Shown in pieces: positions 7,901 to 55,205 of a DNA stretch of 64,000 nucleotides. The notes under the pieces were generated by a model, which saw nothing but the letters and a program-made list of their open reading frames with translations, was not told where the DNA came from and made no database searches. Numbering within the stretch: position 1 is the stretch's first letter; each line of letters opens with the position of its first letter. The translations under genes and the position numbers were made by a program. The DNA is from Lepidodermella squamata (Eukaryota > Animalia > Gastrotricha). Location of the stretch: assembly GCA_047495785.1 (NCBI GenBank), contig JBLDXI010000085.1:62001-126000 (forward strand). The letters are read 5' to 3'.

Positions 7901-10900
7901 ACGCGAGGAACCTTTACTTGGTTCAATAATCGATGACAAGCTGAACAAGAATTCGAATGCTCGCGCCAACTGTACCCTCCGATACGGCGGCGAGACCTTC
8001 ACAAATGGCGATACTTTGACCATTCGAATGAACTACCTGGACACGTTCCAAATGCAATCCTCCTGCGACCTATCCGGAACAGCCATCAGATCTCGGAAAC
8101 CAGTGGCCGTTTTCAGCGGTAACGTCCTGACCAGTGTTGCTACCCCGGTTTACGGTGGCTACCAAGGTTCAGTTCCGCCTCACCAGAACGGCAGATTCCA
8201 GTCTCATCTCATCGACCAAATCCCGCCAGTATCGAGATTGGGCCGGCTCTACTCCGCAGTTTCTGCCCCGAGGCGGTTGACTGGAGACGCCTGGGCAATA
8301 GTGGCGCCTTTCGACAACACCGAAATCTCTGTCTACAGCAACGACCGGTCTACGATCGAAGTCGCGACGAAGTTCCTTCATTTCGGCCAGAAATACGAGT
8401 TCACTAGCGTGAATGACATGCATTTCCTTATCGCGAGTACTAAGCCGATTTTGGTCGCTCAGTTCGTGAAGAGTGAGCAGCTGGGTTCAGCCTACGGGCG
8501 GGGATCTTCACCGTCAATGGTTGTCTACCCTTCAATGGAGCAATGGTCGAAACGGTATACCTTCTTAGTCCCTTACGGCTACAAGCAGGCCTATAAGAAC
8601 TACCTGGTTGTAACCGTGAAGAAGGGTTTCGAAGATGGAATTTTGTTGAACGGCGAATCTGCTCAACTACCAACTGATGCATCTTGGTTGCCGGTTAACG
8701 GGAGCCCGGACCTAGTTTCGGCCTTTGTTCCGATCTCGGAGGGTGTTCATACTGTATATCACGAGCAGTGGTTCGATATGAGGTTCGGGGCGTTGGTCTA
8801 CTCGACTGGGCCCAATGGAAGCTTGTACTACTCAGCTGGGCAGTGTTTGGCAAATCTCAACTGCGAAGTCACACTGACACTACCCAATGACCTCATCGTA
8901 AGTATTTTCACCTATTATATTTTCAAATGTTCAAAAATTTCAAATTTCAAATTCCTATTTCAAAATTTTGAATTTATTTCCCATTTTTTCAAATTTTCAA
9001 ATTTTAATTTTAAATTTAGGGGAAATTTTGGAAATTTTAAATTTTAAATTTTAAATTTTAAATTCCTGAAATTTCAAAAATATTTGAAACATTATCTAAA
9101 ATCCCATAAATCGTGTAACTCGTTAATTTGTTTGCCTTAGGACAATGACTGCGATGGATTTATCGATGAAGAAGTTCTGAACGATCGCGATGATGACGGC
9201 GATGGTCGAATCGATGAGGATACTTACGAGGTGATCGTTCGGCCAACCGATGTTCCAATCATCGAAGATCCCGAAACTACTGCAACTACCGAAAGTACCG
9301 AATCATCGTCTGCCAGTACCGAAACTACAACGCAAGAGACAATAATCATTACCGAAGCTGCTTTCACGACAAAACGGACTGGGAAACTTGAGATGGAGCG
9401 GCCGTATGAACCGGTTACTAGGCCGACCCCTCGCATGCCACCGGTTCGGGCAACAATCTACTTCAATGCGACGAAAATGCCGCCAAGACTGCCGTGGCCT
9501 TTCACGCAAGAAGTTACGATTGAACAAACTCAGCCTGGTCCGATTTACCTGACGATGAGTGGCTGGACCCCGGAGCCTCATAGTTCCACCTCGGCACCGA
9601 CTGGTACCACGAAGGAACCTTACGGGGGATCTTACCGAAAACCAGGCGCGCCGTCTATTGTTTCGATAATCGATGGCCATGGCAATCGGAGGAAACCAGG
9701 CCGGAAACCGAGTAGACGTCCCTCTGGCAAGTATAGCTACCTGAAACCAGCAAGACGACCTGTAACCCTAGCGCCAATGCCTTCCACAACGCCAAAGGTG
9801 ACCCTAAGGCCAACCCCGGTCGAACAATTCACATCACCCACGAAAAGCAACCTCGGCCTTTTAACGACTTGCTACGGCGATGTTGTAGAGATGAAGTGTC
9901 CGAAACAAGGTCACGTGATCTCGCTGATCAGCGCCCATTTCGGTAGGATCAACTACGTGCGAGAGGTGACGTGCGCCTCGGAGAATCCGCACGTCTGCGG
10001 CGGTAATTATGCCGACGATTGCGGGTTTGCGGACGCGTTCTTCGCTATCGACCCGATTTGTTCGAACAAAACAAGCTGCTCAGTGCCGTTAGACGGCGCG
10101 CTGTTACGGAAAATACCGAATAATTCGACTTGTGATGTCTGCCAGATGTACCTAGCGTATGCCTACACCTGCAGGCCTGTTGAAGAATGTTCGTACCTAG
10201 CTAGTCAAAACCCGGATTCTGTGACTTACACCCAGGGCAATTATGCTTATAAGAACGGCTATGAAATCGCGTATTCGTTCGAGGCGATTGAAGCAGCGAT
10301 GAATGTGCTACGAGCTCCGAATTGCTCGAAATCCGGCTCGGTCACGGATTTTGTCGACAATCGATCCGGCGAGCCGGATTCTTGTGAGGCCGATGCTGAT
10401 TTTCATCGTAACCAGTATTACCCGCCCATGTTGGGTAAGCTGTGTAACATGTCGCTTGGCGCGTCGTTTCAATCCGGTGGAATGATGGCGTGGTGCCCGC
10501 CCTTCACGTGTTCGGCTGGCTGTTTGCCGTATCTTGAGATTGATCTTCATGGGTATCACAAAATTACTGGCATTGTTTTTCAAGGCCGCAGGCGGTGGGA
10601 TGCTTGGATTTCAGAGTTCAGGATCGAGCATAGCTTCGACGCCAAGGCGTTCAATGCACTTGCTAGGGTAAGTGTGTTTGAATTTCGTAAAACCCCTCAT
10701 TTTGGTCCTTAACGAAATGCGAAATGAAACAAAGGAATCTCTTTGACTACAACAACGAAATAAATACGAATTTCCCCTTGTCCTGTAATTCTTAGAAGTC
10801 CCAATCGCAAATCTGTTGGGAATGTTGTTTCAAAGCTAAGATCTGGCCCATAGTGAGTAAGAAAACACGAAAATGTTACTTTGAACTTCAGGAACTAGGA

Positions 10901-12549: not shown

Positions 12550-14572
12550 TCAATCGTAAGTTTCACAGAGAAAAGCAGGCCCGCCGAATCCGCACGAGCC
12601 GTCGTACAAATAGCCACTTGCAAAAGCAGCACATGCATTAGCGCCGGCATTGGGGTTCGAATCAGACCATGGCGGAATGTTGGCGTAGGGCGTGCCATCA
12701 GCCCACGCCCATTGTCCTGAAACATTTGACAGGCCAATCAAGTCCGTTGACCCTGAGCTGATAATCGCTAGAACCGCGTCAAGTTCCGTCTGATTCTTGA
12801 TCGTTGCGATCATTCCGCCGATGCTCGCGCAAGTTGCGACAGCAGCGTCGCGACTTCCGCCGATTCGGTAGTTTACGAACGATTTGACAGCGTTCTGGCA
12901 TGCTGCTTCGCTCACGTAGTTTTTCGCAGGGTATTTAGTTTCACCAGCTAGGCAAGCAGTCGCTCGGCACGTAACCACGCCTCCAGACCCAAGACACCGG
13001 GAGAACACGGCCTAAGAAAACAAAACATTTTCAAAGCAAGATTTTCAAGATTCAAATCTTGGTAATAGCTTCGTAACTCACCGAGTTCAGCTCAGATAAG
13101 CACGCGTCGTAATTGATTTGAAAGGAAGTAGAGTTGGAGTAGAGCTTCATCTAATACAGGGACAGAATTAGATGTAATCGCCAACATTTTCACGTACCTT
13201 TGTCGAACCTGTAGGGCACGCCATTCCGACGCACAGCTTCGTTCCATTCGAATCACACTGGGCAGCAGCCTATAGAACAAAACAAGAAGGTTCAAGTTCA
13301 TCGCCTGGAAGCCATTAAGCAGGAATTTCAACTCACTCCTCGAAGGCAGTTCTGTTGGTTCATGTAGGGCTTCGGAGTTGCTTCTTGTGTTTCGTTGTTG
13401 GGCGAACAGCCCGCGGAGCTGAGACGACAGCCGGCAAAAGCTCGGCCTTGTGCTCCGAAACAGCGAACATGCGGCTTCTCAGTATCAGGTACATGAACTG
13501 AAATAGATTTCGTGTTGGAAATTGAAGCTCTGCATTCGGAGATATGAATAGTTTCCTTACTTTTCCCATCGACGCAAGCAGCAAGATTCGAAAACGTCTG
13601 GCCACCAGCAAGCTACCAAGATTTCATAAAAAATGAATGTTCGAAATTTTGTAATTTAAAAAATTTAAAATTATTTTTCCTTGTTTGAAATTTATTTTTT
13701 CGAAAATAAAACTTCGTTTTTTGAATCATCTGCTTACTGTGAAACATTTTCTCAAAAATTTAAGAAATCGTCAAAAATTTCAAAAAGACTAAAACTGTTG
13801 GATAGTTTAGAAATCACAGTCGCCTTAAATATTTATCATGCATTTCTGAAATTGTCCGAAATCAGGATATTGCCCTAATTTACTAACTCGATATTGGAAA
13901 AAAGACAAATACCGTGTTATTTGGGCACTTCTGAACCGGTGGGATGCATGTGATGAGTGACCCGTTCGACAAGCAGCGAATGAAATTCTGATTCTGAAAA
14001 AGCAAGCAAATACAATCAACGCATGGAAGTAAGCCAGGTTGTTACTTACCGCGAAGTTATTTCTTGCGTCATAACAGTACTGCATGCTGGAGCGAAGCGT
14101 TGCTGTGACGTAGAACGGCTGAAACTGGACAAAGTCGTTGATTCAGTTTTGTTTAATTGATACCAATGAAGAAAGCTAACCGATATTTCCTCAGGAGCTT
14201 TGCACGGTATCATGCCTGGTCGACAACTCGGTGTGAGAGCTGCGAATTTGTAGCACATTCGGGCATTCTGATGGGTCAAAGAAGCCAAACCGCTGCTTGA
14301 ACATTCTCGAGACAAATACTTACCCCACTTCGACACAAATCAAAGGTGCTAAAGTCAGGGCCAGACTATGGAAAACATGAGTTGCAAAGCTTTCATATTA
14401 GATCTGAAGTGTTAATTCAAACCTGGTATTCTTTTAATAAGTCGCATGTTGCTGAGCATGTTACGAACACGTTATCGAGTAGTGATAGGCATCGTCTCCA
14501 TTGGCACGAAACTCCGGCGATATGAAGAAACACGACCAGAAGACAAGTGTTGAAAAAACCTGCTTTCATCAT
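12550..14572 (-). CDS. Secreted protein: six 4-Cys modules (2 triplets) + C-terminal C-type lectin domain
   Basis: Starts MMKAGFFNTCLLVVFLHIAGVSC (signal peptide). About 10 small GT-AG exons. The last exon (13011-12550) encodes a CTLD (A..TCASIGGMIATIKNQTE..IGL..WAWADGT..W..NPN..C..YDGSC..FLCE). Confidence 0.8.
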
Positions 14573-35761: not shown

Positions 35762-37207
35762 ATGAAGTCTTTCGTCGCTCTAGCTCTTTTTGCCCTAGTT
35801 GCCTGTAATGTGGACGCCCTTCACCGCAGGAAGGCTGAGCCACGTCTCACCCCTCAGGGCGCGGAGAAAGCTCGCGTTAAGGACGACCCAGGCCAGACCC
35901 TCTTCCTAACCCCCTACATCAAAAGCGGCCAGCTTGCCCAGGCTAGAGCATTGTCTGTTGTTGAGCCGCTTATCCCCAACTACTCTGGAAATGCCGGCTA
36001 CATCACTGTCGATGACGCCACTGGATCGAACATGTTCTTCTGGATGGTGCGAACCCCGAAGAATAACGGAAGCGCCCCGCTTCTTCTGTGGCTCCAAGGT
36101 GGACCAGGCGCCTCGTCCATGTTCGGTCTTTTCGTTGAAAACGGCCCGTTCAAAGTCGACGCGAATATGAACGTCTCGCCGCGAGATATCCACTGGACAA
36201 AGGACTACAACATGATTTTCATCGACAACCCAGTCGGCACTGGGTTCTCGTTCACGCAAAGCGAAGCTGGTTACCGGGTCGATGAGGACGGAGTCGCTGA
36301 TCATTTATACAAGTTCTTCCAGCAATTCTACACGCTGTACACCGATCTTCAAAGCCAACCTTTCTACGTATCCGGCGAGTCATACGCTGGCAAATACGTC
36401 CCGGCTTTGGCTGCGAAGTTGGCGCAAATGGAGCAGATCAACAAGGTCCTAGGCCGAGCTTCACCCATCCCGAAATTGGCGGGTGTTTTGGTTGGAAACG
36501 GGCTGTCGGACCCTCAGACCATGCTTGCCCCTAATGCTGATCATTTGTATAGCCTTGGTCTTTTGGACGAGGAGCAGCGCGAATATTTCCAACAGCAAAC
36601 CGATCTAGCTGTTGATTATATGAAGAATCAAAACTACGCCGCTGCGTTCCAGATTTTCGACTATTTGATCAACGCCGATTTCTACCCGTACCCGTCGTAC
36701 TTCGCCAATGCCTCGGGCTGTACGGATTACTTCAACTTCCTGCTGTGTAGACAAGCCCCGCCAGAGTTCAACTACTACGTCCCGTTTTTGCAGCTCAACT
36801 CAACTCGAAAGGCTATCCATGTCGGCAATCAACCCTATGCGGATCAATCCTCGGTTGTTGAGAAGCATTTGATCAATGGCGATATCATGAATTCAGTCCG
36901 AGATCGGGTTGAGTACCTTCTGACCCAGACCAGTATTCCTATCCTGTACTATTCGGGTAATTTGGACCTGATTGTCCCAACAATGGGTACTGACAACTTT
37001 TTGCGGTCGTTAAACTGGCCGTTTTCTGAGAATTGGCTTCATGCGAATCGAACAATCTGGGCCGATTCTGATAATGAGGCGTTTGCTTACTCGACCACTG
37101 TTCAAACGCTGTCGTTCGCCATCATTCGCAATGCTGGCCACATGGTGCCGTACGACCAGCCGGAGAGTGCTTACCTCATGGTTCGCAAATTCATCAGCGG
37201 AATTTGA
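35762..37207 (+). CDS. CPVL: Serine carboxypeptidase S10, CPVL/vitellogenic-like, intronless
   Basis: Signal peptide, LFLTPYI, WLQGGPGASS, IDNPVGTGFS, catalytic GESYAG / LDLI / GHMVP. Confidence 0.92.
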   Translation: MKSFVALALFALVACNVDALHRRKAEPRLTPQGAEKARVKDDPGQTLFLTPYIKSGQLAQARALSVVEPLIPNYSGNAGYITVDDATGSNMFFWMVRTPKNNGSAPLLLWLQGGPGASSMFGLFVENGPFKVDANMNVSPRDIHWTKDYNMIFIDNPVGTGFSFTQSEAGYRVDEDGVADHLYKFFQQFYTLYTDLQSQPFYVSGESYAGKYVPALAAKLAQMEQINKVLGRASPIPKLAGVLVGNGLSDPQTMLAPNADHLYSLGLLDEEQREYFQQQTDLAVDYMKNQNYAAAFQIFDYLINADFYPYPSYFANASGCTDYFNFLLCRQAPPEFNYYVPFLQLNSTRKAIHVGNQPYADQSSVVEKHLINGDIMNSVRDRVEYLLTQTSIPILYYSGNLDLIVPTMGTDNFLRSLNWPFSENWLHANRTIWADSDNEAFAYSTTVQTLSFAIIRNAGHMVPYDQPESAYLMVRKFISGI

Positions 37208-37824: not shown

Positions 37825-38158
37825 TGTAATTTGTACAGTGTGTAATTTTTCTTTCGATGTAAAAAACATCAGATACAGTCGAAGCGTGTCGAAGAAATGT
37901 AGGTTGAAGTAGTTCACCTGCCATTTCATTAATTCGTTAAAGAGGACTCGTGCCCTGGTGATTCAGAACTGGCTAATTTCGAGCGCTAAGTCCAAAAATC
38001 CAAAAATCAAACCGCAAAGCGGCGTTTTACTCCGTATGTGCCCTCATATTTTATTGCTCTTCAACTTCGCAACATACAGGTTTCTCAAAAACGTATTTGT
38101 CATTAAATATGACTATAGTCGTCTTCGCATTCCATTTAATGAAGAATCAACTCGCATA

Positions 38159-41100
38159 TTAATAGCCTGTTGAAATTAAAATCAAATTATTTGATGATAC
38201 ATCATTTTGATCGAGGCTTACCATAAAAAGCAGCACAATTTAACCGGAGGAATTTCGTCTGGTCCGTATTTTTGTAACCATTAATGATACTGAGACAAGC
38301 GATGGAGCCATTCAAATTTGAAGAAGCGCCACTGAATACACGTTTTAACACAAAGATTAGCAATATATAGAACAATCAAAGAATTTTATATTGACAAAAA
38401 CGCGGCTTAACGATCCATGGAGCAGCAACTTTTTCTAGCAAATGTGCATTACGAGATTTGCTGGCGTGAATTTGCTGAGATTCCATGAATTCATGCACGT
38501 TATTCCGCTTCTTGCAAAGGCCTTACTAACTTGCTTAAAAATTCAAAATTTCCGGCCCTCATTTTGACTGTTCTACGCGGCCAGGGAACGTTAGAGAATA
38601 CCTAGCAAAACAACGAAAGATAATAATTTGCCCCAGAAAGTGGATTTTCCACGAGGCGATTTGTTCGGCCGCACCTGGGACTGCATTGCCTCGGGTCGCG
38701 CTTTTTTCCACGCTATCGCCAAATAGAGATGTTCCGGTTCCATTTTTTATCTGTCCGGTTCGGTTCGGTTCGGTTCCATACTTTGTGAGGTGTAACCCGG
38801 TTTTTTCGGTTTAACAGCGGTAATAGGCACACCACAAATTGGCTAGAAACATAGAGCGAAGTAGGACCGCGGAACTGGTAGGGACCAGAAAATTCGACAT
38901 AAGGGTCCCCCCTTTGGTCTTTGAATGAGCTCACCGTACGGACCGATGGAACTGGTAGGGATGATCCCTACCATCCCTAGCGGTACTTCGCTCTCTGGCT
39001 AGAAAACTCGACTTGGAGTAAAAATGATCACGCAACAGCCGAAGTAATTAGCATCGATAATTGCGAAGTAGCTTGTGCAAATTCCGATACGGTATTGCGA
39101 CGTGTTTGTATTCCGAGAAGGAACGGGAAAAGGATTTTCGGAAAAATATGGATGTTCGCGATATTAATGAAGGAACGGTAAATAAACGATTTACGAATGA
39201 TAAAGCATACAAATAGATTTACGAATGATAAAGCATACAAATACCTGCCAAGTCGGAAAGATAGTGTAGATGTCGAGGGAGACATATCATTGATGGATGC
39301 CGTATTTGTATCGCAACTGATTTCCAGTACAACCGAACTGCGTTTGAGATAGTAGAAATGCGGTACTCCATCTTGTTGAGGGCAAGTTGTTGAAAGCAAA
39401 GAACCAGCTGGACCGATCGAGCAAGTGAATGTTGTCTCGTTGCTCATGAAGAGGCTCAGCCCGGTAGTTGTAAGCCCTGGGTCAGAAAACTCAAGTAAAG
39501 GAGCCGGAAAACTCAGAGGCTTCGCGTAAAAGCTGATCGTGAATGACCCACCGCCGAAATTCAACTTGCTGCCAGTCATTCGAATCTGGTTTCCGCTGTT
39601 AAGATTGACGCCTTTACCAGCGGCGCCGAACACGCTTTCCCCGGGTAAGAACGGCGACTGGCTGGTGACTGAAGCTGCAGGAGCGATTATGTCGTCGAAG
39701 TTTGATACGAGAGGGAAATACGCGATATGTCCAGAGATTACTTTGCCTATGTTGCTTGGAACAATCGGGTTTCCGGTGTGAAGTTGGTAACACATTCTCC
39801 GGAGCGAATGAAAACGTTTAGCTGAGATGGTCGCTTTGTGGACGGATAAGCACGAAAAAGAGGCGGGAGCACCTTGTGGGCGGTCCTTGAGGGCTTTGAG
39901 TGACGTGATCGCAGCTGCCGGTGGTACTATAACAGAAGGACTGCTAATGATATCGTTGCAGAACGCATATTGTGAGCTGGTTGATTTTTCGTACGACACG
40001 CCAATGTGGGGCCAAATTCCATTGTCACATTGAACTGTAATTTGAGAACCTGACAATAAATCATAAAATCAGCTATCTAGCTCCCGAAAGCATAGCTCAA
40101 CTTGCCATCAGCTCTCTTAGCAATGACTTTAGAGGTTGAACCATCATATGCGAGAGTAAGTTGGGTGTTTCCAGCTGCATCAAGCATCGCAACTACGGGG
40201 ATGAAGGAAATCGAAATTGGGATATTTACGAAAGCCGCAATAGTATAGTCTGTTGATAAGTTGCCAAAGGCTGGGATGGGGATATCGAGATTTGCCTTTA
40301 CTGGCATGTATATTGCCGTACTCGTCATGCCATATGGGCCAGTTGTCCAGACGAAGTTTCCAATCGGAATAGCGGAAATCGAATCCGGGCCCATGTCGTT
40401 CAGATTACCATTAAGCGGCCAGATTCCAGCTGCAAGAGGAAGCCCCGGAACGGCATCTGTTGATTTAAACCTTATATTAAAAAAGTAGGAGTACGTATGT
40501 ACGTGTATGTAATATCCTTGACAATTGTGTTTATTATGACTGATAATTCGCTGACTTTTGTGGCAATTTTTTATGGAATTTTTCATTTGTCAGATCATGT
40601 ATATTGAGCGGCAAACACTTCTAAAAAAGCTTATTTGCAGACCCCCTAGAAAAGTGAACGACGAGAAATTCAAATTTCCGCATGTTTTTCACTGCAAATT
40701 AAACGTTTATTTATATAAATTAAAAAATTAAATAATATTTCGTTTACATAGCAACGAGATTTCGTTCGTCCGTTAGGTAACGAGGGCGCGCGAAATTGAA
40801 AAATCAATAGGTCAAAAAATCGATCTTTTAGAGATACAACTTCACTCGAAGCTTCACGAAGCTTCTTTCAAAAGAGCTTCTTCCCTTGTCTTAGGACAGG
40901 GTGAATTAGGCGATCATCCTAACTTGCCATGCAAGCTCGTCAAATGACTTTGGACGGTTATGTTCTCTCAAAAAGATCTCTCAAAATTCCAATTTCCAAT
41001 TTCTTTCTTATTTCAATTTTTCAATTTTTCAAATACAAATGACGGGGAACTCCCCGTTGTCACGGGTCGCCTTCGTTCGTTCGTCGTTCGTTCGTCGTTC

Positions 41101-41919
41101 GTCGTTCGTCGGTCTGTCGGTCGTCAAGGAGGATAGTGGGGAACCTATAAAAAATAGCGGTGTAGTCACAGTTACCCCATGCAGGCTGTATTCCGCTGTT
41201 AGGTGTATCGTGAAGGAGGATAGTGGTGTACGTAAAAAAAACAGACTGTCCAACTGTCTCACAACCATCGACTATTGCTTATTGCTATTACTGAAGAAGG
41301 ATGTAAAAGGCGTGTTCAAGATTGCCACACGGCGACGTGCGAACATCTTCGCGCTCTCCATGTAACGTGCTATTCGTATAGCACGAACATCAGACGACGA
41401 ATCTACACGGTAACATACTACAGCTCTGTGCAGTCGCCAACCGATGCCGCGTGCGCTGTGCCGCTGTCGATAACCGCGTTGTGCGCATGACATCAACGCG
41501 CAGCATCCAATGACATGCTGACTCTCGTGACATGGCGTCATAAATCGTCTATCACCTGTTTTCAATCTTCCAATGAAAAGTTCCCGGACGTATGCAATTC
41601 GTACTATTTTAGCATGTACGACTGGCAACTTTTGACCTGAGACTAACGGCAATAGCACATTCCCAGACCCGCTCACGTTTTCGTGAATACTTTTACGCTA
41701 TGCGCTATGCATGTGCGCTATTTTTACCGAATAACAAGCAAATCTTACTACCACGTAGATATTCAAATTCGTGATTTGTAGCTTGAATTGAAGCCCACCT
41801 GAGCAACGATGCATTAACTTGCAAGTCCATCAGCTCGGCCTGCGTGATATGGACCCTGATGCCAATATGTGTAGGTGGCGCTTACGGAATGACTCTCAAA
41901 TGAATGATCATCTCCATCC

Positions 41920-41954
<35 letters not shown>

Positions 41955-44460
41955 CGCATGGGTGACACGATACGTGGTTATGCGCAAAGCTGGGCAGCAA
42001 GTCACGGATGTGCAAGAAAGTTATACTTAGGTCTTAGGTTAGGCATGTTCAAGGTCACACGTGCCCACGTGTTCGAGAAAGTCACGGAGTTCCCCGTCAA
42101 CTGTCAAAGGCCGCAGGCCGACAGTGGTAATTCAATTTGCAGCAGTAATAGTTATAAGTAATAGTTTTATTTAGCCTCTTCTAGACTGAGCGTTGTCATA
42201 TACAGTATCCAGTTATGTAGATGACGAAAGCCGACAAAAAGTAATCCACCCTTACTTTTAGGTTTACCTACCCTCTTTGTTGAAGATCTTGCTTTTCCTA
42301 TAAAATCGTAAGTTTATCGAGTCAACAATCATGCGCAATTATGCGCAATTTTAAAATGAGGTCAATTCAGCTAGTTTTTATTCAATTTTTATAAATTCAA
42401 AAAATATTGAATTCTCAGAATAATGTGTTTAAATTGCCCTCATATTTGCAAGCATGAATTCTAAATTCAAATTTGAAAAGCTATAGTGAAAATTTCGATT
42501 GCAAGATAACGCAAAATTCTTTTTTAAATGCCATTTTGAGACCCCCATTTACGGCTTATCTGAATTTTAGCTTGAGTACGTCAGTGTGCAAAATTCAGAA
42601 TGCGTAAATTCGCAATATGATAGCCTGCTATAATATAAGCTTTAATGGAGCATGGAGGGCTGAATCACGTGTGCCATCACAGCCTCGGCTTCAAATTGCG
42701 GACTAAGCAGATAAGTGAAATCCCAGCTGACGCTAAGTTGGACGTTCCGATCGAGGCAAAGAAACAGCGCGGCCGGAAACCTCGTGCGAAAAGAGCTTTA
42801 ATTTACCAAATTACACTTCAACTTCAATGCCAGTTCGCAAAACTATCAGATCGAAAACTATGCATTTTGCTTTATTTCATGTCTTTCTTGTATTATTGCG
42901 ACGTAATAAAATAAAATAGGGGCGGTTCTCAATTGTAGGCCGGGTTTGCAGGGTCAAAGTACAACTCTAAAAATAGCGCGTGACGGTTAAAAATAGCACT
43001 ACTCTGTAACGTTATATGTGTAGCCTTATTTTTCAAATTTTTCAGATTTTTCAAACTATTTTAGAAATTCCACTATTAAAATAACCCAGCATTCTCAAGA
43101 TACTTTTCAATAATCTGGAGAATCTGGAGAATTTAAAAAATTATTCTAGCAACTAGCTGCATTATTTCAATAGCGTGAATCATGCTTTGGACTTTGACCT
43201 TACGAAGCCTCTATAAAACAATAAGGAAAAACTCTAATTTTATAGAGGCTGTGTATCTAATTAAATTGTGACAATAAGACACTCTTTCATGGAGACAAAA
43301 ATGGATAGAAACGGCAAAAAAATATAGAAAAATCGAACCGTGATACCGACAAAACCATTTAAATAGAGACAAGAAAATGTCCGTCCATTTCCCCAAACTC
43401 ACTGAAAAATTTAGAACTCACTTGTTTCACATTGCAGAGATGTTGGGAAGAGCTTCACCGACTAGAGAAGAAAATTATTAAACAAGCAACAACTAATTAT
43501 ACCTGGTTTTAAACTGACTCACCTGCCACGGGGAAGCACACGGATCATCTTTAGCCACGCATTGGTAACTCAGATCAGAGCTGGCGTAGCATAGTTTTCG
43601 CTGCGAAAAATCGTAGTAACAAATTTTAGCGACAGATCATTTCCAAGTGACAAACCTGAAGTATTGCCACCAGGTAGTCAGCGTAATTGTCAGCAAACAT
43701 TGCTTTCGATGAATAAGAACCCGACTATAAAAATAAAATATTTATTTCAATGGAAAAGCAACTCTTATAAGCAAACGAACCAACGTCGTTCCAGCGGGGC
43801 ATGTGCCGTAGCAGGACGTGAAATACGTGTTGCTCGGGAAGCAATCTACGGCAGCCTTTGCGATATGCAGATAAATAAATCATATAATTCACGTGCTTAT
43901 AAATTGGAGCAAATTTTGATATCGAAGAAAAAATAAGTTCAGCATATTCCTATCAAGGAAAAAGGCTAACCCCTGATTTACAGGAAGCTTCCGTGGCGAA
44001 TTCTTCGCTGTCGCCCAACTGTAATGAAAACACTGCAATCTACATTTTTCTACATGGGGAAAATGACGAACCTTGTTCGAGGAGTTAGGGCAGGTAGTAA
44101 AGCAGCCCACAGTATTGTTGGCGGCATTAACGCATCGAAAGTATGAAGCTATTTTCGAAAATCTTTAACACAAGATTTATATTCAAGTATCGTAGACTCA
44201 CGCAGCGTCAAGCAGTTCTGGAACGAATCAAAGCTACCAGCGATGGGTTTCTGAAAGGATGTGGAGTAGTATAGGCAAAATTTAACACAGAACCAGATGT
44301 CACCGTATCGATTGGACAGTTGGTCGGTTCAGGGACGCAAACGGCAAGCGAGATTGTTGAGTTTACGCATTTCGTATGCTTTCCCTGTTGCAGAAAGATT
44401 GGCAATAGTTGGCTTTCCTTTGAACGAGCATGAGTTACCTGGGTGATATTGATGCATTTT
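38159..44460 (-). CDS. Paralog of the 49843-55205 gene (Cys modules + 2 LamG/pentraxin-like domains); 5' end not found, possibly a truncated pseudogene
   Basis: Exon-for-exon match to ~53010-49843, e.g. KCVNST..CVPEPTNCPIDT, AGIWPLNGNLND, WPHIGVSYE, SFYAKPLSFPAPLLEFSD, NLNGSIAC, ending GY-stop. No convincing signal-peptide exon upstream of 44460. Confidence 0.65.
38850..38997. mobile_element. hAT-like MITE
   Basis: TIR CATAGAGCGAAGTA / TACTTCGCTCTCTG with the exact 8-bp TSD GCTAGAAA. Confidence 0.8.
41040..42130 (+). mobile_element. Helentron-associated / DINE-1-like element (HINE)
   Basis: Subterminal IR TGACGGGGAACTCC..GGAGTTCCCCGTCA, 5' palindrome acggggaactccccgt, (CGTT/CGT)n microsatellite, and a 3' stem-loop actgtc..ggcc gca ggcc gacagt. 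No TSD. Confidence 0.75.
42640..43005 (+). mobile_element. Mutator/MULE-type transposase C-terminal (SWIM-like) remnant
   Basis: VCHHSLGFKLRTKQISEIPADAKLDVPIEAKKQRGRKPRAKRAL resembles the CxH-LG..IP..AK.VP..KRGR..AK.AL tail I recall from invertebrate MULE/SWIM proteins. Confidence 0.5.
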
Positions 44461-46173: not shown

Positions 46174-49173
46174 TGAAACCAGACTCCAGTCTGCTTTTGA
46201 TTGTTTCAATTTTTCTCACGGCCACGTTTGCCTTAGAGCAGTGTACTTGGAATGCAACGAAAAGTTCAAATAACTTCTATCTGAAGTCTGGCAGTAGAGG
46301 CTTGTCCTACCTTTCGTCGAAATCGAACTTCCAACCAAGCACCAATTTGGTAGTGCCATACGGCACAACCGTCAGTCTCTCGTGCGAGTTTGGTACACAA
46401 GGAGTATCCAAATTCGATATATCCGGTCGATGCTTGGAAAACGGATGGTGGAGCAATGACGTTGCTTGTTCGGGTGAGGCATTTTCACGCTATTTTCAAC
46501 GATTATATTTTCTACCGCCATTGCAGCTGATACATTCATGCAGCAAGGCAGCGATTGCAGCTGGGACAAAACTTTCAACTTCTTCGGGTACAGAACAAGC
46601 ACAAATTCCGAAAAAACATGGTCGTCACTATCTAGCCGTGTCACGAATACCGAAGAGCATACTGTAGTCCGCGTTCACATCTGCTCGTACGGTTCCTATC
46701 GTCAAACCACATGTTTGAACGGCAAGTTTCTCCCGGATCCTAAAGGATTTGCCTGTTCAAAAACGGACCTATTCAGTCAGTCGAAATTAGTTGCCTTTTG
46801 GCCACTAGGCTCGGACACACGCTTGTTAGCCCTCACCCCGAATACGCCTAGTTTCCAAGCATTTGGGAACGCGGCATTCGTAGCTCCGAATGTTAAACCG
46901 CCCGAGTCTGGTTACCATGTTCGCAGAGATAACAGCAGCTTTTTATCCGCAACTGGAGTTACAGGAGTCGGTGGACGTGTTTGGTCGTTTTGCCTCTATT
47001 TCAAATCTGCAGACGGGCCATTGATCACCATTCAGACGCCGGACGGTAAGCCGGTTGAAGTCATCGCTAGCGGCACGAAATATATCGTGCAGAAAGGGCC
47101 TACCACTTTGTCCATCACTTCGACTAAATCCAAACCTGATATGTGGCAGTTTATACTGGTGGTTATCAAGGATAACGCGTTGACTATCATGCTGTTGAAT
47201 GATTACGCCTCGCTCATTAAGGGATATTCAACTAAAGCGTATTCGGGCTTATCGGCGAAGAGCAATATCAGCATCCACCTCGGAAAAATGGGGTATAAGT
47301 TCAGCTTTTATTCTCTTTGTTTAAAGATTATTTTCTTTTCTAATTTTTCGTTCGTCCATCACTGAAGTTATTGTTGTTATTGCCATGGTTTCTAGGTCAA
47401 CAAACACAAGTAGCGCTATTGTCTCGTGTTTAATGATGTTCAACTCGGATCTGTCAGATCTGAATTCCGCCGAAATACTGCGGAAACACTGCAGGAACGG
47501 TGATATATTTAGCACCCGTTCAAATATTGACAATAACATTTTTTCTAGCTACATCATATCCAAATAGTGAAACTTCCGGTTGCCAGAGCTGCGATTGGAC
47601 GTACGATACCCATAGATCGCTTCATCTTGCAAATACTCGTTAGTGAAATGCCACAAAAAACTCCGCATCGTCAATATTTACCAATCTAGGCAGTCAACTT
47701 CGAAGAGGTGGTGCGATTCTAACTGAAAACGGCCTAACGACTCGACTCGCTTCACTAAACCAGCAAGGCGCCGTTTGGTTGTCAGAGGTAATGTCAAACT
47801 AGCATAATTACAATCCTTATTTACTTTAAATTAATTCGCAGCCAATCGATTCCCAGATGAAAAACTGGCTGGTCGAATTTCACGTTTCAAGTGATCGCAA
47901 TTTAGGCAAATTGGAGTTTTACATCGTTCCCCGCGGTAGTCCACTGAATCTTGACAAATTTGACGCTGTGAATAGCCCGATTTGCGTCGATTACACCAAA
48001 TTTCGAGGCTTTTTGTTCCATTATGTTCCGCCATCCACGTTTCACTGGTACGTAAGCTCGAATCCTATAGACATTACTAAGACGTCCCCAAAAGAGAGCA
48101 AAGCAAATGCCTCATTCTCTCCTGTCATGTTCGCTATCGAAAAGGAGGGGTCAGATTTCAGGGTATTCTCGCGGAGTGACGGGACAGCCATGAAACTCAT
48201 GGAAACCAGTTTCCCGGCTTTTTCGCAATTCTCCGAGCTACTGTACATCGGGGCAGCTGCTGATGTGGGCTATGTTACCAAGACGTTTACAACGCTACCC
48301 TACTTGTATCAGATCAAGTTTTACACCGATGGGATAGTTACTACAACCACTTCTCAAACAACAGCTTCGTCTTACCCTGCGAATTTCTCATCGACTGTTG
48401 AAAGCGATTTGATTACAGAAAGTATTACAGATGCTGGAGAAACTGATCTTGGTTCGGGCGATTCGACTACATCGTTTTCAACCGGAATCGAGGGAATAAT
48501 TGTAACATCAATAAACAGCTCTAGTAGTGGAACCACATCGCCATCGACTCGGAAGGAATCTCCTACTACGAAAGCTAAGGTCCCGGCGATAGATCCCGGC
48601 TACCCTTACGATTTGGGGTTGTCTCTCAAGGTCTACGGCGATAACATTACGATTCCTGATAGAAATCTTACGATATTTTCAGAGCCGTGGGATCCTCGGC
48701 TTGATCAACAGGACTCGAATGTTTTCAAAGCTCTGGCAAACTATATGCTTCCAGTTCTTGAGGATCTAGTAAACCAATCGGCTGCGGAACTTGGAGGCAT
48801 CGTTCAAAGCGTGAGAATAACACGTTTCAGAAAAGGCAGCGTCATTTCGGACTACATCGTCGCATTGAGGAGTTTGACGCAATTAACGGAGGAAGAGATT
48901 GCCGAAAAGGTGAACATCGCAACGAAAAAGCTGAAGGAAAAGACGGTTGTGTTGTTGAATGGTCTCAGCTCTTCTCGCCTAGGCGAATCTACTCTGGTGA
49001 ATGCCACTGGACCGCTGCTAACAACTGCGAAATCGTCTACTAGCAGCATGCCAAAAGCGAATGCACCAAAAGCGAATGATCCAAGTTCACCGAATGAGGT
49101 GGCATCGGGGAGAAACCCGGCTAGCTCTGGCTTAGGTTGCACTATCCTGCTCTTAATTTCAATCGCTATCTAA
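46174..49173 (+). CDS. Cell-surface protein: signal peptide, 2 CCP-like, LamG-like, unknown beta domain, Ser/Thr stalk, SEA, probable GPI anchor
   Basis: Starts MKPDSSLLLIVSIFLTATFA. Motifs VPYGTTVSLSC..CLENGWWS, LVAFWPLG, SEA (WDPRL...S..FK.LA, ITRFRKGSVISDY), short terminal hydrophobic tail. About six exons; the middle boundaries are approximate. Confidence 0.7.
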
Positions 49174-49842: not shown

Positions 49843-52800
49843 TCAAAAGCCTGTTTAACAAAAATCATCTCATTTGTTGATGAAATTATTCGGATCGAGA
49901 CTTACCAGAATATGCAGCACAGTTGAACTGGAGAATCAACTGCAAGTGCTCATAAGCTGGACCATTAAACACATTAAAACACGCGATAGAGCCATTCAAG
50001 TTATCAGAAGCGACGCTAAATACAATAAGTATAGATATTCATAGTAAAACCTCGGTACGGTATTCCCTGCTCTATCATTTTTTACCTGCCAAGTCGGAAT
50101 GATGACGTAGATGTAGAAAGGGTAAAGGGAACCGATTTGTAGACGAAATTGCCATCGCAACTGATTCCCAATCGGGGGCCAGAAACCGAGAGCGTGTAGA
50201 AATGCGGCAAATCTTCTCTTTCGAGGCATGTTGTTGAAAGCGAGGGGCCATCTGGACTGTTCGAGAAAGTGAACGTTGTCGCGTTGTTCATGAAGAGGTT
50301 CATTCCGGTGGTTGTAAGCGCCTCATCTGAAAACTCGAGCAGCGGAGCCGGGAAGCTGAGAGGCTTCGCGTAAAAGCTCATCATGAATAGCCGGGAGGAA
50401 CTGAAGTTCAACTTGCTAGCCGTCATTCGAATCTGGTTCCCGCCGTTTAGATTAAGGCCTTTATTAGCGACCCCGAACACGCTTTCCCCGAGTACGAATG
50501 GCGACTGGCTTGCGACTGAGGCCGGGGGAGCGATCAAGTCATCGAAGCTTGTTGCAAGAGGGAAATACACGAATTGTCCGTCAAATACGTTTCCGATATT
50601 GTCTGGAACAAGTGGCTGCCCGGTGTGAAACTGGTAACACTTCCTCCTTAGCGAGCGGAATCGCTGAGGTGGGATGGCAACTTTGTGAACGGAGAAGCAA
50701 GCGAATTCAGAGGTTAACAACTCGGAGCTTTTGCCGAGCTTGAGAGACGTGATCTGTGCTGTCGGGGCTGCTTTGTCCAGGCCGTCAGATAGACTGCTAG
50801 TGATATCGTTGCAGAAAACGTACTGCGTACGAGTCGATGCTTCGTAGGTCACGCCGATGTGGTGCCAAAGCAAGTGGGAGAAACAATTAACGCTTGTTTG
50901 AGTACCTAAAGGCATGAGTAATGAAATCGGTGTCACGGTTACACGAACAGCTTAAACTTGCCATCAACCCTGGCGACTGTGACCGTATTAGCAGCATTGT
51001 TGTACGTCAGAGTAAGTTGGACGTTATCACTCGAGTCGTGCATCTCAACTACAGGAATTTCATCAGCGAAACCATATACCACTTTGATGAAAGTCGCAAT
51101 AGTGTAATCTGTTGATAAGGTGCCGACAGCTGATGTGGGGATCTTGAGATAATTCGAAGTCTTTTTAAGCTGTATCGCCTTTCCAAAGACGCCAAATGGC
51201 GAATAATCCCAATCATTCGTCCCAATAACTTGGGCCGAAATTGGATTTAGCCCGATATCGTTAAGATTGCCATCGAATGGCCAGTATCCAGCTTCGAGCG
51301 GCAGGCCTTGAACAGCATCTATTAATTTCAACGAAATAAATGTGATTAGGCCAATTAATTAAAGTCCAAACGAAAACACTACAGCAAAATAAGCGATATG
51401 ACTCATCATTCGGATTGACGATAGACGCAATACTTGAAGATAAAAATATTGAAACTAACTTGCTTCGCACAGTAAAGAAGTGGCGAGGAGTTTGACCAAC
51501 TAGAAAATGATAAAACGGGCAATATTTCATTCCTGGCAATGAAGCGACTCACCTGCCAAGGTGAAGCGCATGGTTCATCTTTAGCAACGCATTTGTAATT
51601 CAAATCGTTTTGATCGAAGCAAAGTTTTCTCTAGAAAAATTGAAATAAAAAATGTCATCGAGAGATATCATTCTTATAATGACAAACCTGCTGGATCGCC
51701 AATAGACATTCAGCGTAATTGTCAGCGAACACTGCTTTCGACGAATAATTGCCTGACTAATTAAAAACACGTATTTAAGCAGATAAGGAAGTAACTTTTC
51801 AATTAAACCAACCGGAGTCGTTCCGTTGGGGCAGCTGCCGTAGCATGCCGTGAAATAGGTGTTGCTCGGAAGGCAATCTACAGCACCCTATCAAAATTTA
51901 AAAGCGAGAATTGATCTCTTTATAGCCTTCATGGAATCCAACGCATTGCAATATAAAGTTATAGAAATTGAATGAATAACAAATATCTCTCGGTGCGATA
52001 AAGAGCGAGAAAATTGTTTAGGTGGGGAGCTAGAGAAACGCAAGGGGCTAGGCCCAGAGCCTAGGAAGTGACATACTTTAGATATTTGATAATTATATAT
52101 TTGAACCACAATCTTGAAAACGACCCTGATTCTTTTAAAGAAACTAAAATTTCCGGACTCTGAAGGCCTCCGGAGACCCCCTGGTGATGAGGCGTTCTAG
52201 TAATAGTAATGAGTAAGGCCCTAGCAGTGCGCGAGGTACGGGGGTAATGAGGGGCATCTTACCCCCAGTTCACAAGGCCAAAGTGGGAAATTCCTCAAAT
52301 AAACAGGGGTTCATAAACTTTGGTCATAAATTTGAGTCCGAAAATAGCCCCTAGTTCGAGCATCCTACTTCGCGCATTGGGCGAACCCGGAGTGGTGAAG
52401 TGCTGCTACCCGACCGCGTCCGGGCCGAAAGCGGGCTCGGGCCCCAAAAAAAGTATATATTATTCTGTAATAAAGGCTAATATAACGGTAAAGCCTAACC
52501 CCTGATAGGCAGGAAGCTTCAGATGCGAATTCTGCATTGTCACCCAACTGCAATGGTATACAATAAATCAGCATTCGGAAATCGGAAATACGAAGAAGGA
52601 CAAACTGCAATCGAGGAATTTTGACAGGAAGAGTAGCAACCCACGAAATTGTTGGCGGCGTCAATGCACCGCAAGAACTTGGTCGTTTCTATATAATTTT
52701 AAAATATTAACAAACGAAATGATTGAAAACTCCATATGAGCCTACCTTCAGGCGTTGAGCACTTCTCAAACGAATCAAAACCGCCAGAGGCTTGTGTCTG

Positions 52801-55205
52801 AATAGGTAAAAGATGCAACATAATATTTGCCATTTACCGCAACCAGTTCTTACCGTATTGATTGGGCAGTTGGTCGTTTCAGGGACACAAATTACCGGCG
52901 AATTTGTCGAGTCTACGCATTTCTTATGCAATCCCTGTCGCAGAACATTTGACATGGTGACATTTTTTGTTTGTACAAGTTACCTGCGTGGCATTGATGC
53001 ATAGCTGAAGATTGCTGCTCAGCGAGGTTGAGGCAGAACCGATCATTCCAAGCTGTTCGCATTGATGGAATTTAATCATGAACGATTAGGCATAAATTTA
53101 ATGACAACTCACGTCGAATTTCCCGACGCCAGCTGGGCAATTCTCTGAGCAGCTACCTCCGTTTGTCACGTCGTAGCAAAGTTCAACAGACTGAATTACA
53201 ACGAAGTTGTAGACTTGTCCTGGTGCTGTCCTGAGGAATACTTACCCCGATTTCGCAGTTAGATTTCGTTGAGTAGACAGTCGAGCTTAAAGTCTAAAAT
53301 AAACAAATCAATACATTCAATGGCTTCAGTTCGAAAGTGGCGAAAGCTCACATCACTGCCATTACAACTCAACGGAGCCTTAACGCAGCCAGAAAACGAG
53401 GGCTTTGTCCAATCGAAGCACCGGCGATGAGGGTACATAACAGGCGATGCTAATATAGAAATAGTCATAATTACTGGAGCCTCTTTCATTTACTAAAAAA
53501 TGAACCTGTTTTGCAATCTGGCAGAGAGTTGAATGTAAAACCAGAAATACTGCCATTTGGGCAAGAGGCGCCGGCTGAAGCCAGTTTGCATTGAACGAAA
53601 GCATATGTCGTCGAGTCGACACAAAGCGTGTGAGGTTGCTTCAAATATATTAATGATACATTCAAAAAGAAAAAAATGCAGAGGAAACCCGTTTCACGTT
53701 TACAAACCTGAGCGATAAGACATTCAGCGTAGTTGCTGGCAAAATCCGACGCCGAGTTAAAATTCGATACCTGCAATAATTTTACGAACAAAATGTTTTT
53801 TTCAAATTATTTGCATAGCCTAGTATTTAAGCTTCGCCTCAATTTTATTGTTGTAAATTTTCTAAACCCGTTAATATTTAGATCAACTCACAGACGTGAA
53901 GCTTGGCGACGGACAATTATTTCGGCAAACAAGTTCAGTTGATGAAGAGCAAAGCGCTGCCGGCTGAGGACAAACGGAAACACTTGAAATTTTTTAATCG
54001 TAAAAACCAAAAACGAACCCCTTTCGTGCAATGAGCTTTGTCGATGTAGGAACCAGCGCTAAACGTCTGAAAAAGGACGGGCTTAGAGGTGAGGGAATTA
54101 ATGTCTTAACAATATCACGTTGGTCAAATTTGCTGGCTCGCAAGCCGTTGATTGGCAGCCAATGTATGACCGATTGCTCGTGGCGAAGCAGCGGTATTGA
54201 GTCTTGAAGTCGTCAGCAATTCGAACAACTAAAAAATAGGTACATGAAACACTCAATGTTTTGTTCACAATAGCTGCCATGAATACTCACTGGACAGCTC
54301 CGAATAGCATTGCTCAATTGTGGTCACAGTCCGAATAAAAGTCTGTTTGAAAGAAAGCGAACAAATAAAATGAATGACATTTCGGATAAAAAATTATAAA
54401 TTATTTAAGAAATCCCAAAATTATTCACTTTTTGGGAAAAATAATTAGGTAGAATGAGAATTTGATTCCGAATCAAAGCGACTAATTCCTAATTCCTAAT
54501 TCCTTATTCCTCTGACATAAAATACTTTTCAATTATTTTGATTTTAAAATATTTTGATAACTTTACACACGAAATCGGTCGGACAGCTGGCATTATAAGC
54601 AACGCACACACGTTGACCGCTTTTATCGCACAGGTTAGCCGGGCGAGTCTGTGCGGAGCAAAAAGTCGCACTTGAAATTGGTGAAAAAATTAACGAACTA
54701 GGAATTTCTTGATATCGAACCGGCATTCGTCGTATTTAGACGAGAAGAGCTCGCCGATGTACTCATTGGCCTAGGCAGAAAATATTTAGCACATTCTGGT
54801 AGATAATTTGAAACTCACAAGGACTTCATCCGAAGAGCAGCCAGCGTTTCTGGGAATGCATCGCATGCTCAGCTGCTTGTAGTTGTAACAGCTTCGAACC
54901 GACTGCAAAAAATAGGTGTGAATCTCAACAATAAGAGGTAGTATTTCATGAAATTACCCCAGAAGTACACGCTGTATATGTGGGTAGAGCATATCCAATC
55001 TGAAAAATCAATAAATGGCATTAAAAATCGAAAGATAATGACCGAATTTCCAATTCATTACCCAAACTTCGTCGAGGTATGAGCAATCGGTTTTACAGCC
55101 GGCGAATGAATCGTTTAGACGGGAGAAGCAGCGTTTGAATGTTCCTTGAGCTTCGCAAAAATTGATTATAGATAATACCAGACATAAACCAAGCAATTTC
55201 TTCAT
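49843..55205 (-). CDS. Secreted protein: twelve 4-Cys modules (4 triplets) + 2 LamG/pentraxin-like domains
   Basis: Signal peptide MKKLLGLCLVLSIINFCEA. More than 20 micro-exons of ~40-130 nt. LamG-like motifs GYWPFDGNLND, WHHIGVTYE, FACFSVH, FVYFPL, GSIACFNVF; ends YSGF-stop. Confidence 0.78.
52225..52379. mobile_element. hAT-like MITE (CAGTGCGCGAAGTA family)
   Basis: TIR CAGTGCGCGAGGTA / TACTTCGCGCATTG. The interior matches 55749-55893 and 57442-57580. Confidence 0.7.

Follow-up and report, generated by a model that had tools for sequence, protein, structure and literature searches.

A micro-exon-encoded stalk of repeated four-cysteine modules in a secreted protein with a putative lectin-like head from the gastrotrich Lepidodermella squamata

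The window, i.e. the whole 64-kb stretch of Lepidodermella squamata DNA that was analyzed, carries on its minus strand gene 1, a truncated duplicate of it (gene 2) and gene 3, which has the same type of stalk (Table 1). The manual GT-AG model of gene 1 comprises 26 exons encoding 1009 aa, from an ATG at 55205 to a TAA stop at 49886-49888; the frame is open over all exons and every intron is GT-AG. This model, on the minus strand, confirms the gene that an earlier note on this DNA had placed here, and the four strings quoted there (RCFSRLNDSFAGC, RCFATSNRSYIGC, RCFDWTKPSFSGC and RCIDAANNFVGC) are all found in the 1009-aa product. Beyond the hydrophobic N-terminus, the gene 1 protein contains no second hydrophobic 19-mer, implying that it has no transmembrane helix. 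Contigs of run X1, which match gene 1 at an identity of 99% or more, lack exactly the introns 51631-51687, 51319-51459 and 50016-50085, each bounded by GT..AG when read on the minus strand. Four more exon edges coincide with contig ends or loose ends: 54066 and 53964, where loose ends mark exon starts in triplet 2, ~53191 in triplet 3, where contigs spanning 53107-53191 stop at the exon edge, and ~54820. The X1 contigs are short, with a depth of 2-9 and joint sides of 20-25 nt, and give direct support for three introns. The RNA thus confirms part of the exon structure, while most stalk junctions lie outside direct reads. Gene 1 is expressed and spliced, and its product is a secreted protein.

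Table 1. Coordinates of the genes, modules and other features in the window
Feature	Position	Strand	Exons	Remarks
Gene 1, coding span	49886..55205	-		manual GT-AG model; signal peptide, 12 modules and head
Signal peptide MKKLLGLCLVLSIINFCEA	55149..55205	-	exon 1, first part	hydrophobic N-terminus
Triplet 1 (A1, B1, C1)	54291..55136	-	55205-55062 (A1a part), 54999-54958, 54902-54819, 54770-54699, 54648-54571, 54342-54291	ends in phase 1
Triplet 2 (A2, B2, C2)	53506..54228	-	54228-54119, 54066-54019, 53963-53892, 53770-53708, 53638-53506 (C2)	both ends phase 1
Triplet 3 (A3, B3, C3)	52746..53449	-	53449-53352, 53293-53246, 53190-53113, 53052-52984, 52934-52854, 52797-52746	both ends phase 1
Triplet 4 (A4, B4, C4)	51460..52688	-	52688-52606, 52547-52500, 51887-51813, 51756-51688, 51630-51553, 51499-51460	both ends phase 1
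612-nt intron, A4/B4	51888..52499	-		carries a high-copy repeat, about 52168-52539
Head, ~440 aa	49886..51318	-	51318-50943, 50892-50086, 50015-49886	
Gene 2	38158..44457	-		duplicate of gene 1 that lacks the 5' part; B3 (end), C3, A4, B4, C4 and head present
Gene 3	12553..14572	-		signal peptide, A1 B1 C1 A2 B2 C2, C-type lectin domain

The 48 Cys within residues 20-575 of the gene 1 protein fall into 12 groups of four, and the modules so defined follow one another in the order A-B-C four times. Each is 38-53 aa long and has no conserved Trp. The Cys spacing is 9-10/3-6/16-19 in A modules, 7-9/3-6/21-25 in B modules and 7-10/6-8/15-16 in C modules; between modules, the Cys gap from A to B is always 7 (7/7 cases), that from B to C is 9-14 and that from C to A is 10-18. 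Pairs of modules of the same type outscore pairs of different types (label permutation, p = 0.002), and type-specific non-Cys residues are kept across genes, for example R-C-F...F-x-G-C in A modules and F-x2-N-Y-x-E-C in B modules. All modules but one span two exons of 39-110 nt each, or more if an exon also carries the signal peptide or a linker; the exception, C2, is one exon. Stalk exons range from 39 to 144 nt. The strict fourfold A-B-C repeat from micro-exons described in the earlier note is therefore borne out, as are the many phase-0 junctions: 19 of the 23 stalk introns are in phase 0, all of them inside triplets, and the other four are in phase 1 and lie exactly after C1-C4. Owing to these phase-1 introns, each triplet constitutes a 1-1 cassette. 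Exon A2 in gene 3 and exon A4 in gene 2 likewise begin in phase 1, and most exons lying wholly within a triplet are 0-0 symmetric. Module-level exon skipping, as suggested earlier, would fit the intron phases, yet the few X1 contigs show no case of it. Two junctions of the gene 1 model, e4/e5 and e24/e25, are uncertain; e24/e25 has three in-frame options, and e4/e5, outside RNA coverage, was picked so that the cysteines stay even in number and conform to the family. An alternative e4/e5 splice (donor after 54723, acceptor before 54670) is less probable, as it leaves one residue past Cys4 of B1 and a fifth Cys in C1, in contrast to all other copies.

In blastn, gene 2 is 66-73% identical to gene 1, introns included, with the homology ending inside exon B3b of gene 1. 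There is no GT donor after its C3b exon, and B4 has NYADY for NYAEC and has thereby lost a Cys; gene 2 is probably decaying. The head of gene 3 is recognized by Pfam as Lectin_C (PF00059, 41 bits vs a cut-off of 22.6, E 3.6e-10; 12553-13011, minus strand), and a homologous-protein search with its C2+CTLD exon gave 68 candidates, of which 0 were significant. Exon C1b of gene 3 has no frame-compatible acceptor and contains an in-frame TAA ahead of any donor. Such damage in the neighbors, the 5' truncation of gene 2 and its lost donor and Cys as well as the frame problem and stop of gene 3, could indicate that gene 1 is a decaying or unexpressed copy and that its regular pattern is a relic. The unbroken 1009-codon frame of gene 1 over 26 GT-AG-spliced exons, the retention of 48/48 stalk Cys and the closely matching spliced X1 contigs make this explanation highly improbable. 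Comparison of gene 1 with gene 2 over 105 stalk codons yielded a dN/dS of 0.19 (dS 0.92, dN 0.17), indicating, as judged from this paralogue, that the stalk micro-exons are under purifying selection.

The head of gene 1 probably comprises two tandem LamG/ConA-like domains; members of this superfamily are beta-sandwiches of about 180-200 aa. By ESM Atlas features, 47 of 60 matches of the head were Laminin_G_3 (score 0.98), and the two halves of the head align weakly to each other (22% over 188 aa). A weak tblastn match (26% identity over 118 aa) was obtained with a metagenomic protein carrying the shared WHHIGV.Y motif, and a metagenome scan with the head alignment retrieved nothing but generic bacterial or viral loci of the WHHIGV.Y/LamG type, none of them with stalk modules. 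Searching 1.84 billion proteins with the 268-aa head exon (phmmer) gave 0 matches. The earlier description of the modules as the stalk of a lectin family holds for gene 3, where the stalk precedes a CTLD, but the head of gene 1 has no Pfam match, and its 'lectin' label derives from the embedding match to Laminin_G_3 and the weak tblastn alignment; 'LamG-like lectin', with putative sugar binding, is a fold-level guess.

Profile comparison with hhalign aligned A with C, all four Cys in register, at a probability of 92% (E 5e-7), and B with C at E 5e-4. A phase-0 intron 4-8 residues past Cys3 is common to the three types, and AF2 models of A and C (the latter folded from the C2 exon), which are of moderate confidence and derive from 7-row alignments of the first half of each module only, share one topology, in which a hairpin is followed by a third strand and a C-terminal helix. 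Second-half exon fragments were dropped from the module alignments because MAFFT set them on the wrong Cys. Considering the profiles, the intron position and the models together, we infer that one lineage-restricted module, about 40-50 aa in length, has diverged into the forms A, B and C. In the predicted fold, Cys1 and Cys2 would lie in the beta-hairpin, Cys3 in a loop (often as C-P) and Cys4 in a short helix following the third strand, so that each module would have two disulfides. The stalk may have begun with the triplication of a single two-exon module; the triplet would then have become a cassette between phase-1 introns, and the cassette would have been duplicated long ago, to four copies in gene 1 and two in gene 3, and set before different heads. 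The fixed 7-residue A-to-B gap and the phase-1 borders show that the triplet was the unit that was duplicated. A new superdomain of ~135 aa, as the earlier note had it, is not borne out in that wording, since the three types would go back to a single two-exon, four-Cys module. Nor is expansion by unequal crossover supported as worded: the four triplets have no DNA similarity beyond 18 nt, and recombination between them is therefore not favored now.

Pfam assigned no family to the nine stalk exons searched (of 23) or to the complete A (54 aa) and C (42-44 aa) modules, and at E up to 10 there was no match for the complete modules or for eight other exon pieces. On the half-module exon C1a, Kazal_3 scored below threshold (14.3 bits vs a cut-off of 26.2, E 0.034). 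PDB sequence profiles gave one match at E 0.89 for A and zero for C. Foldseek, VIA-align and the ESM Atlas, searched with the AF2 models of A and C, found no described family; Cys-rich extracellular domains were absent among the structural matches, and the best look-alikes were MbtH-like proteins (6n8e_A, 9up2_B and 5ja1_B). By features, the ESM Atlas returned nothing usable for C2 and only unnamed clusters for A (0.81-0.82). The earlier claim that the modules fit no described Cys-rich family accordingly holds for Pfam (nine of 23 exons, whole A and C), for PDB profiles and for fold searches with A and C. EGF-like domains have six Cys, three disulfides and two small beta-hairpins in about 35-40 aa; here we found four Cys, a hairpin with a third strand and helix in the models, and no EGF-family Pfam match at E up to 10 for the stalk exons and complete A and C modules searched. 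CCP/Sushi domains are all-beta sandwiches of about 60 aa with a conserved Trp and four Cys bonded 1-3 and 2-4, and were rejected on module length, the lack of a conserved Trp, the predicted C-terminal helix and the absence of a Pfam Sushi match for the sequences searched. Kazal/follistatin-like domains were set aside on four Cys instead of six, with the sub-threshold Kazal_3 as sole match.

The modules could still represent a very divergent member of a known family (furin-like, ephrin-receptor-like, TNFR-type, Kazal/follistatin-like or EGF-like) that is unrecognized but not new. Furin-like, ephrin-receptor-like and TNFR repeats are stacks of beta-hairpins with C-x2-C and C-P-x-G motifs, and the C-x3-8-C-P-x-G motif of B and C recalls, by description, the C-x2-C-P-x-G-T/S of ephrin-receptor-like and furin-like repeats. 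In addition, small Cys-rich domains are difficult to detect by sequence, the one Kazal_3 signal points in this direction, and the module-level searches covered complete A and C, not whole B or triplets. However, the first-half exons of B and C and complete C gave no Pfam match to furin-like, ephrin-receptor-like or TNFR repeats, which were also absent among the fold matches of A and C; the other Pfam and PDB profile searches came out empty as well, and four Cys, not six or eight, with a predicted C-terminal helix are unlike the hairpin stacks of these repeats and EGF. We therefore consider a hidden known family rather unlikely. Somewhat less doubtful, though still not likely, is that each A-B-C triplet makes up a structural unit of its own, a rigid rod segment of ~135 aa and 12 Cys with an undescribed fold. 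If true, a large family of secreted recognition proteins specific to gastrotrichs would have the triplet as its signature scaffold, with heads (CTLD, LamG) swapped by phase-1 exon shuffling in a lineage-private, diversifying recognition or adhesion system.

Our main reading, to which we assign a probability of about 70%, is that the gene 1 product is an N-glycosylated secreted glycoprotein in which an (A-B-C)x4 stalk, built from diverged forms of one lineage-restricted module, serves as a spacer before a pair of LamG/ConA-like domains. With 24 disulfides and N-glycans, the stalk would be stiff and would present the C-terminal beta-sandwich pair to a ligand, probably a glycan, pointing to a role in recognition or adhesion as for other stalked soluble lectins. 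Alternatively, the stalk modules themselves might bind ligand, as in LDLa, SRCR and CCP arrays, with the heads as accessory effectors or anchors and A, B and C as three specificities. The cross-gene conservation of type-specific residues and the low dN/dS of the stalk are consistent with such binding. Nevertheless, the conserved residues are aromatic residues, Gly or neighbors of Cys, as fold determinants typically are, the pairing of one stalk with several recognized binding heads is the usual signature of a spacer, and the 11 N-glycosylation sequons in the gene 1 stalk suggest a shielded rod, all of which makes ligand-binding modules improbable.

As a spacer, the stalk can be compared with those of collectins and neck- or stalk-type C-type lectins, which like gene 1 are secreted and carry a carbohydrate-recognition-type head at the C-terminal end of a long repetitive stalk; their genes form tandem clusters, as here, and the head of gene 3 is a true CTLD. 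Their stalks are collagen triple helices or coiled coils, whereas here they consist of disulfide-rich globular modules, and gene 1 has a LamG-like head in place of the CTLD. EGF, CCP/Sushi, LDLa, TNFR and furin-like repeats are, as here, small disulfide units of ~40-50 aa in long tandem arrays, bounded by phase-1 introns as mobile units and joined to varied partner domains. Unlike them, the present modules have four Cys spaced about 9/3-8/15-25, a predicted C-terminal helix and, for the parts searched, no sequence or fold match; moreover, it is not one domain but a whole triplet of diverged copies, with phase-0 introns inside, that forms the mobile unit. The micro-exon genes (MEGs) of schistosomes, which belong to the Platyhelminthes, a phylum considered close to Gastrotricha, encode secreted proteins mostly from very short frame-symmetric exons (6-81 nt, multiples of three). 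MEG products are short, are not Cys-repeat proteins and show documented variation by exon skipping, whereas the exons described here follow half-module borders and skipping is absent from the few X1 contigs.

No concept is overturned: repeat stalks rich in disulfides and exon shuffling are both well known, and the present stalk is a building block particular to its lineage rather than biology of a new kind. If the module is truly new, a domain family would be added, together with a clear illustration of how such a family can arise, from a two-exon module to a differentiated triplet, a phase 1-1 cassette and shuffling onto several heads. Gastrotrichs are a phylum with almost no molecular data, and the stalk proteins may underlie their recognition, immunity or adhesion. 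The Lepidodermella genome paper nowhere mentions lectins, cysteines or introns, and, by title and abstract, none of the papers listed on gastrotrichs, lectins and adhesives deals with such proteins in this phylum. ORF tracks and Pfam will miss or fragment secreted-protein genes of this kind in Lepidodermella squamata. The high-copy element in the A4/B4 intron has no Rfam match and no second copy within the window, and its word depth in X2 is 889-2162 vs a baseline of 46.

The model of gene 1, the minus-strand gene under study, comprises 26 exons encoding 1009 amino acids. The product begins with a signal peptide (MKKLLGLCLVLSIINFCEA), continues as a Cys-rich stalk (residues 20-575) and ends in a head made up of the other ~440 amino acids; as it carries a signal peptide and no second hydrophobic 19-mer was found in the whole protein, it is secreted. 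The Cys residues of the stalk number exactly 48 and fall into 12 four-Cys modules, which follow one another as A-B-C four times, upholding the strict order proposed in the earlier note, whose four quoted type A sequences all occur in the spliced product. Pairs of modules of the same type scored higher than pairs of different types (p = 0.002, label permutation), and the per-type alignments remain coherent when copies from two paralogues are added. Type A has the consensus R-C-[FILV]-x7-8-[FY]-x-G-C...C...C-x2-G, with gaps of 9-10, 3-6 and 16-19 for Cys1-Cys2, Cys2-Cys3 and Cys3-Cys4, respectively; type B ends in F-x2-N-Y-x-E-C and has gaps of 7-9, 3-6 and 21-25; type C reads C-x7-10-C-[VI]-x5-C-P...F-x3-C, with gaps of 7-10, 6-8 and 15-16. 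The described splitting of modules over two tiny exons holds for 11 of the 12, C2 being a single exon, and no B module is contained within one exon.

Nineteen contigs of sequencing run X1, presumed to be RNA, match the window at 99% identity or higher. X1 contigs leave out three GT..AG introns exactly, confirming one head junction and two that lie inside the stalk or where it ends, and other contigs end or switch to paralogous sequence at four exon edges, marking four further borders; the micro-exon junctions drawn earlier are thus borne out at these places, and the others are predicted by the GT-AG model. Independent support comes from gene 2, a 5'-truncated duplicate: comparison with its stalk gave dS = 0.92, dN = 0.17 and dN/dS = 0.19 (105 ungapped codons), at an overall DNA identity, introns counted, of just 66-73%, so protein-level selection has acted on the micro-exons. 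Gene 1 is a real gene.

Coordinates of the features in the window
Feature	Position	Strand	Description
Gene 1, coding span	ATG 55205 to stop 49886-49888	minus	three-frame reading and stitched GT-AG model
Introns left out of X1 contigs	51631-51687; 51319-51459; 50016-50085	minus	GT..AG
Exon edges marked by X1	54066; 53964; ~53191; ~54820		gene 1
B2b-C2 intron	53639-53707	minus	gene 1
B1b-C1a exons	54555-54729		second contig in X2
High-copy element	52168-52539		within a 612-nt intron of gene 1
Gene 2	38158-44457	minus	tandem duplicate of gene 1, interior of exon B3b to 3' end
Gene 3	12553-14572	minus	signal peptide, A1 B1 C1 A2 B2 C2, then C-type lectin domain (Pfam-supported)
Gene 3, exon C1b	13828-13912	minus	second half of module C1
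CPVL-type serine carboxypeptidase	35762-37207	plus	single exon; Pfam Peptidase_S10, E 1.8e-96
Large secreted-type domain exons	6117-10712 and 47857-49173	plus	VWA, IgGFc-binding, SUEL lectin and F5/8 type C, SEA

Family searches covered single-exon stalk sequence, namely complete A and C modules and nine exon pieces. Neither the complete A module (54 aa) nor the complete C modules (44 and 42 aa) matched a Pfam family at E values up to 10, and eight of the pieces gave none either; the ninth, half-module C1a, gave a sub-threshold Kazal_3 match (14.3 bits vs a cut-off of 26.2). PDB profile searches yielded one match for type A (E 0.89) and none for type C, and Atlas feature searches with stalk modules gave nothing usable. 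Structure prediction covered two modules that each lie within one exon, the 44-aa C2 of gene 1 and the 54-aa A2 of gene 3, using 7-row alignments of first-half exons. The C2 model (mean pLDDT 67.6) has predicted strands at 3-8, 14-19 and 30-36 and a short turn at 39-41, and the A2 model (mean pLDDT 73.9) has strands at 10-15, 21-26 and 36-38 and a helix at 48-53; in both, the first two strands carry Cys1 and Cys2, respectively, Cys3 sits in the loop after strand 2, and Cys4 lies within or at the helix. Foldseek found no match to either model in the PDB (best E 8.4 for C2 and 2.8 for A2), the Atlas shape search returned unrelated families only, and EGF, CCP, TSP1, Kazal, TNFR or toxin-type domains were not prominent in any of these structural searches. 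In keeping with the earlier suggestion, these searches linked the stalk module to no described family. The Cys module repeated in this strict higher-order pattern is unrecognised and lineage-restricted.

Rather than the proposed single 135-aa superdomain, the evidence favours A, B and C having diverged from one small domain and been duplicated together as a triplet cassette. Types A and C align at all four Cys (probability 92%, E 5e-7), B and C at E 5e-4 and A and B at E 0.012, values that the Cys-rich composition may inflate, and all three types share a phase-0 intron 4-8 residues past Cys3. Stalk introns are in phase 0 in 19 of 23 cases, in line with the many phase-0 junctions noted earlier, and the four phase-1 introns are precisely those after C1, C2, C3 and C4, so every triplet is a symmetric 1-1 cassette; phase 1 is likewise the starting phase of the gene 1 head, of exon A2 in gene 3 and of exon A4 in gene 2. 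The last Cys of A and the first of B are 7 residues apart in all seven cases from the three genes, B-to-C linkers span 9-14, and the C-to-A linker varies from 10 to 18. Coupling of A to B is rigid, and the loosest joint falls between triplets. At the DNA level, the four triplets of gene 1 share 18 nt at the NYAEC motif and nothing else, and the duplications are therefore old, none being recent, and expansion by unequal crossover, which the earlier note considered possible, has no support as an ongoing process. Intron phases and position, linkers, relatedness of the types and age of the duplications together point to a history in which one two-exon module would have been triplicated, the copies would have diverged into A, B and C, and the triplet with its phase-1 borders would have been the unit copied afterwards.

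Nothing was found in support of module-level exon skipping. The B2b-C2 intron is 69 nt long, a multiple of three, and has no in-frame stop; its retention would preserve the frame, adding 23 residues with two extra Cys. Over the B1b-C1a exons, DNA run X2 contains a second contig (depth 31 vs 48, 19 differences in 175 bases), which is a divergent allele or close paralogue of that part of the stalk. The intronic element of gene 1 is high-copy, with an X2 word depth of 889-2162 vs ~46 elsewhere; it matched nothing in Rfam, a search for terminal repeats found none, and the window holds no second copy.

Gene 2 is probably decaying: it is 5'-truncated with a breakpoint inside exon B3b, a signal-peptide exon is missing, C3b is not followed by a GT donor, and NYADY in place of NYAEC removes the final Cys from B4. 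Its dN/dS against gene 1 is 0.19 despite the truncation, lost donor and lost Cys, and the ~3 kb intron ahead of its head is filled with other sequence. In gene 3, exon C1b has no frame-compatible acceptor and runs into a TAA before any GT donor, and the frame encoding the expected ...PDFGQFQKC is unreachable from the phase-0 donor of C1a; this could reflect pseudogene damage, a product consisting of modules only, or an indel introduced in the assembly, which was built from amplified DNA.

We read the head of gene 1 as two divergent LamG/ConA-like domains with putative sugar binding. Its 268-aa exon had no match at E <= 0.001 among 1.84 billion representatives (HMMER) and none in Pfam; its language-model features fall among Laminin_G_3 clusters (0.98, 47 of 60 matches). 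The head contains the motif W-H-H-I-G-V-T-Y, also present in a metagenomic protein that aligns with it at 26% identity over 118 aa across the modelled e24/e25 exon junction. Similarity between the two halves of the head is weak (22% over 188 aa). The stalk may be a stiff, glycosylated, disulfide-rich rod presenting ligand-binding heads, and the stalked protein would act in recognition or adhesion.

The best full-length database relatives of the CPVL carboxypeptidase are 40-46% identical and scattered over all bilaterian phyla, none exceeding 46% over the full length, as would be expected of a poorly sampled host phylum. GC content is ~42% in the window and 43% in the Lepidodermella squamata genome (PMC11660948). 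Extracellular and lectin-type genes are abundant across the whole window.
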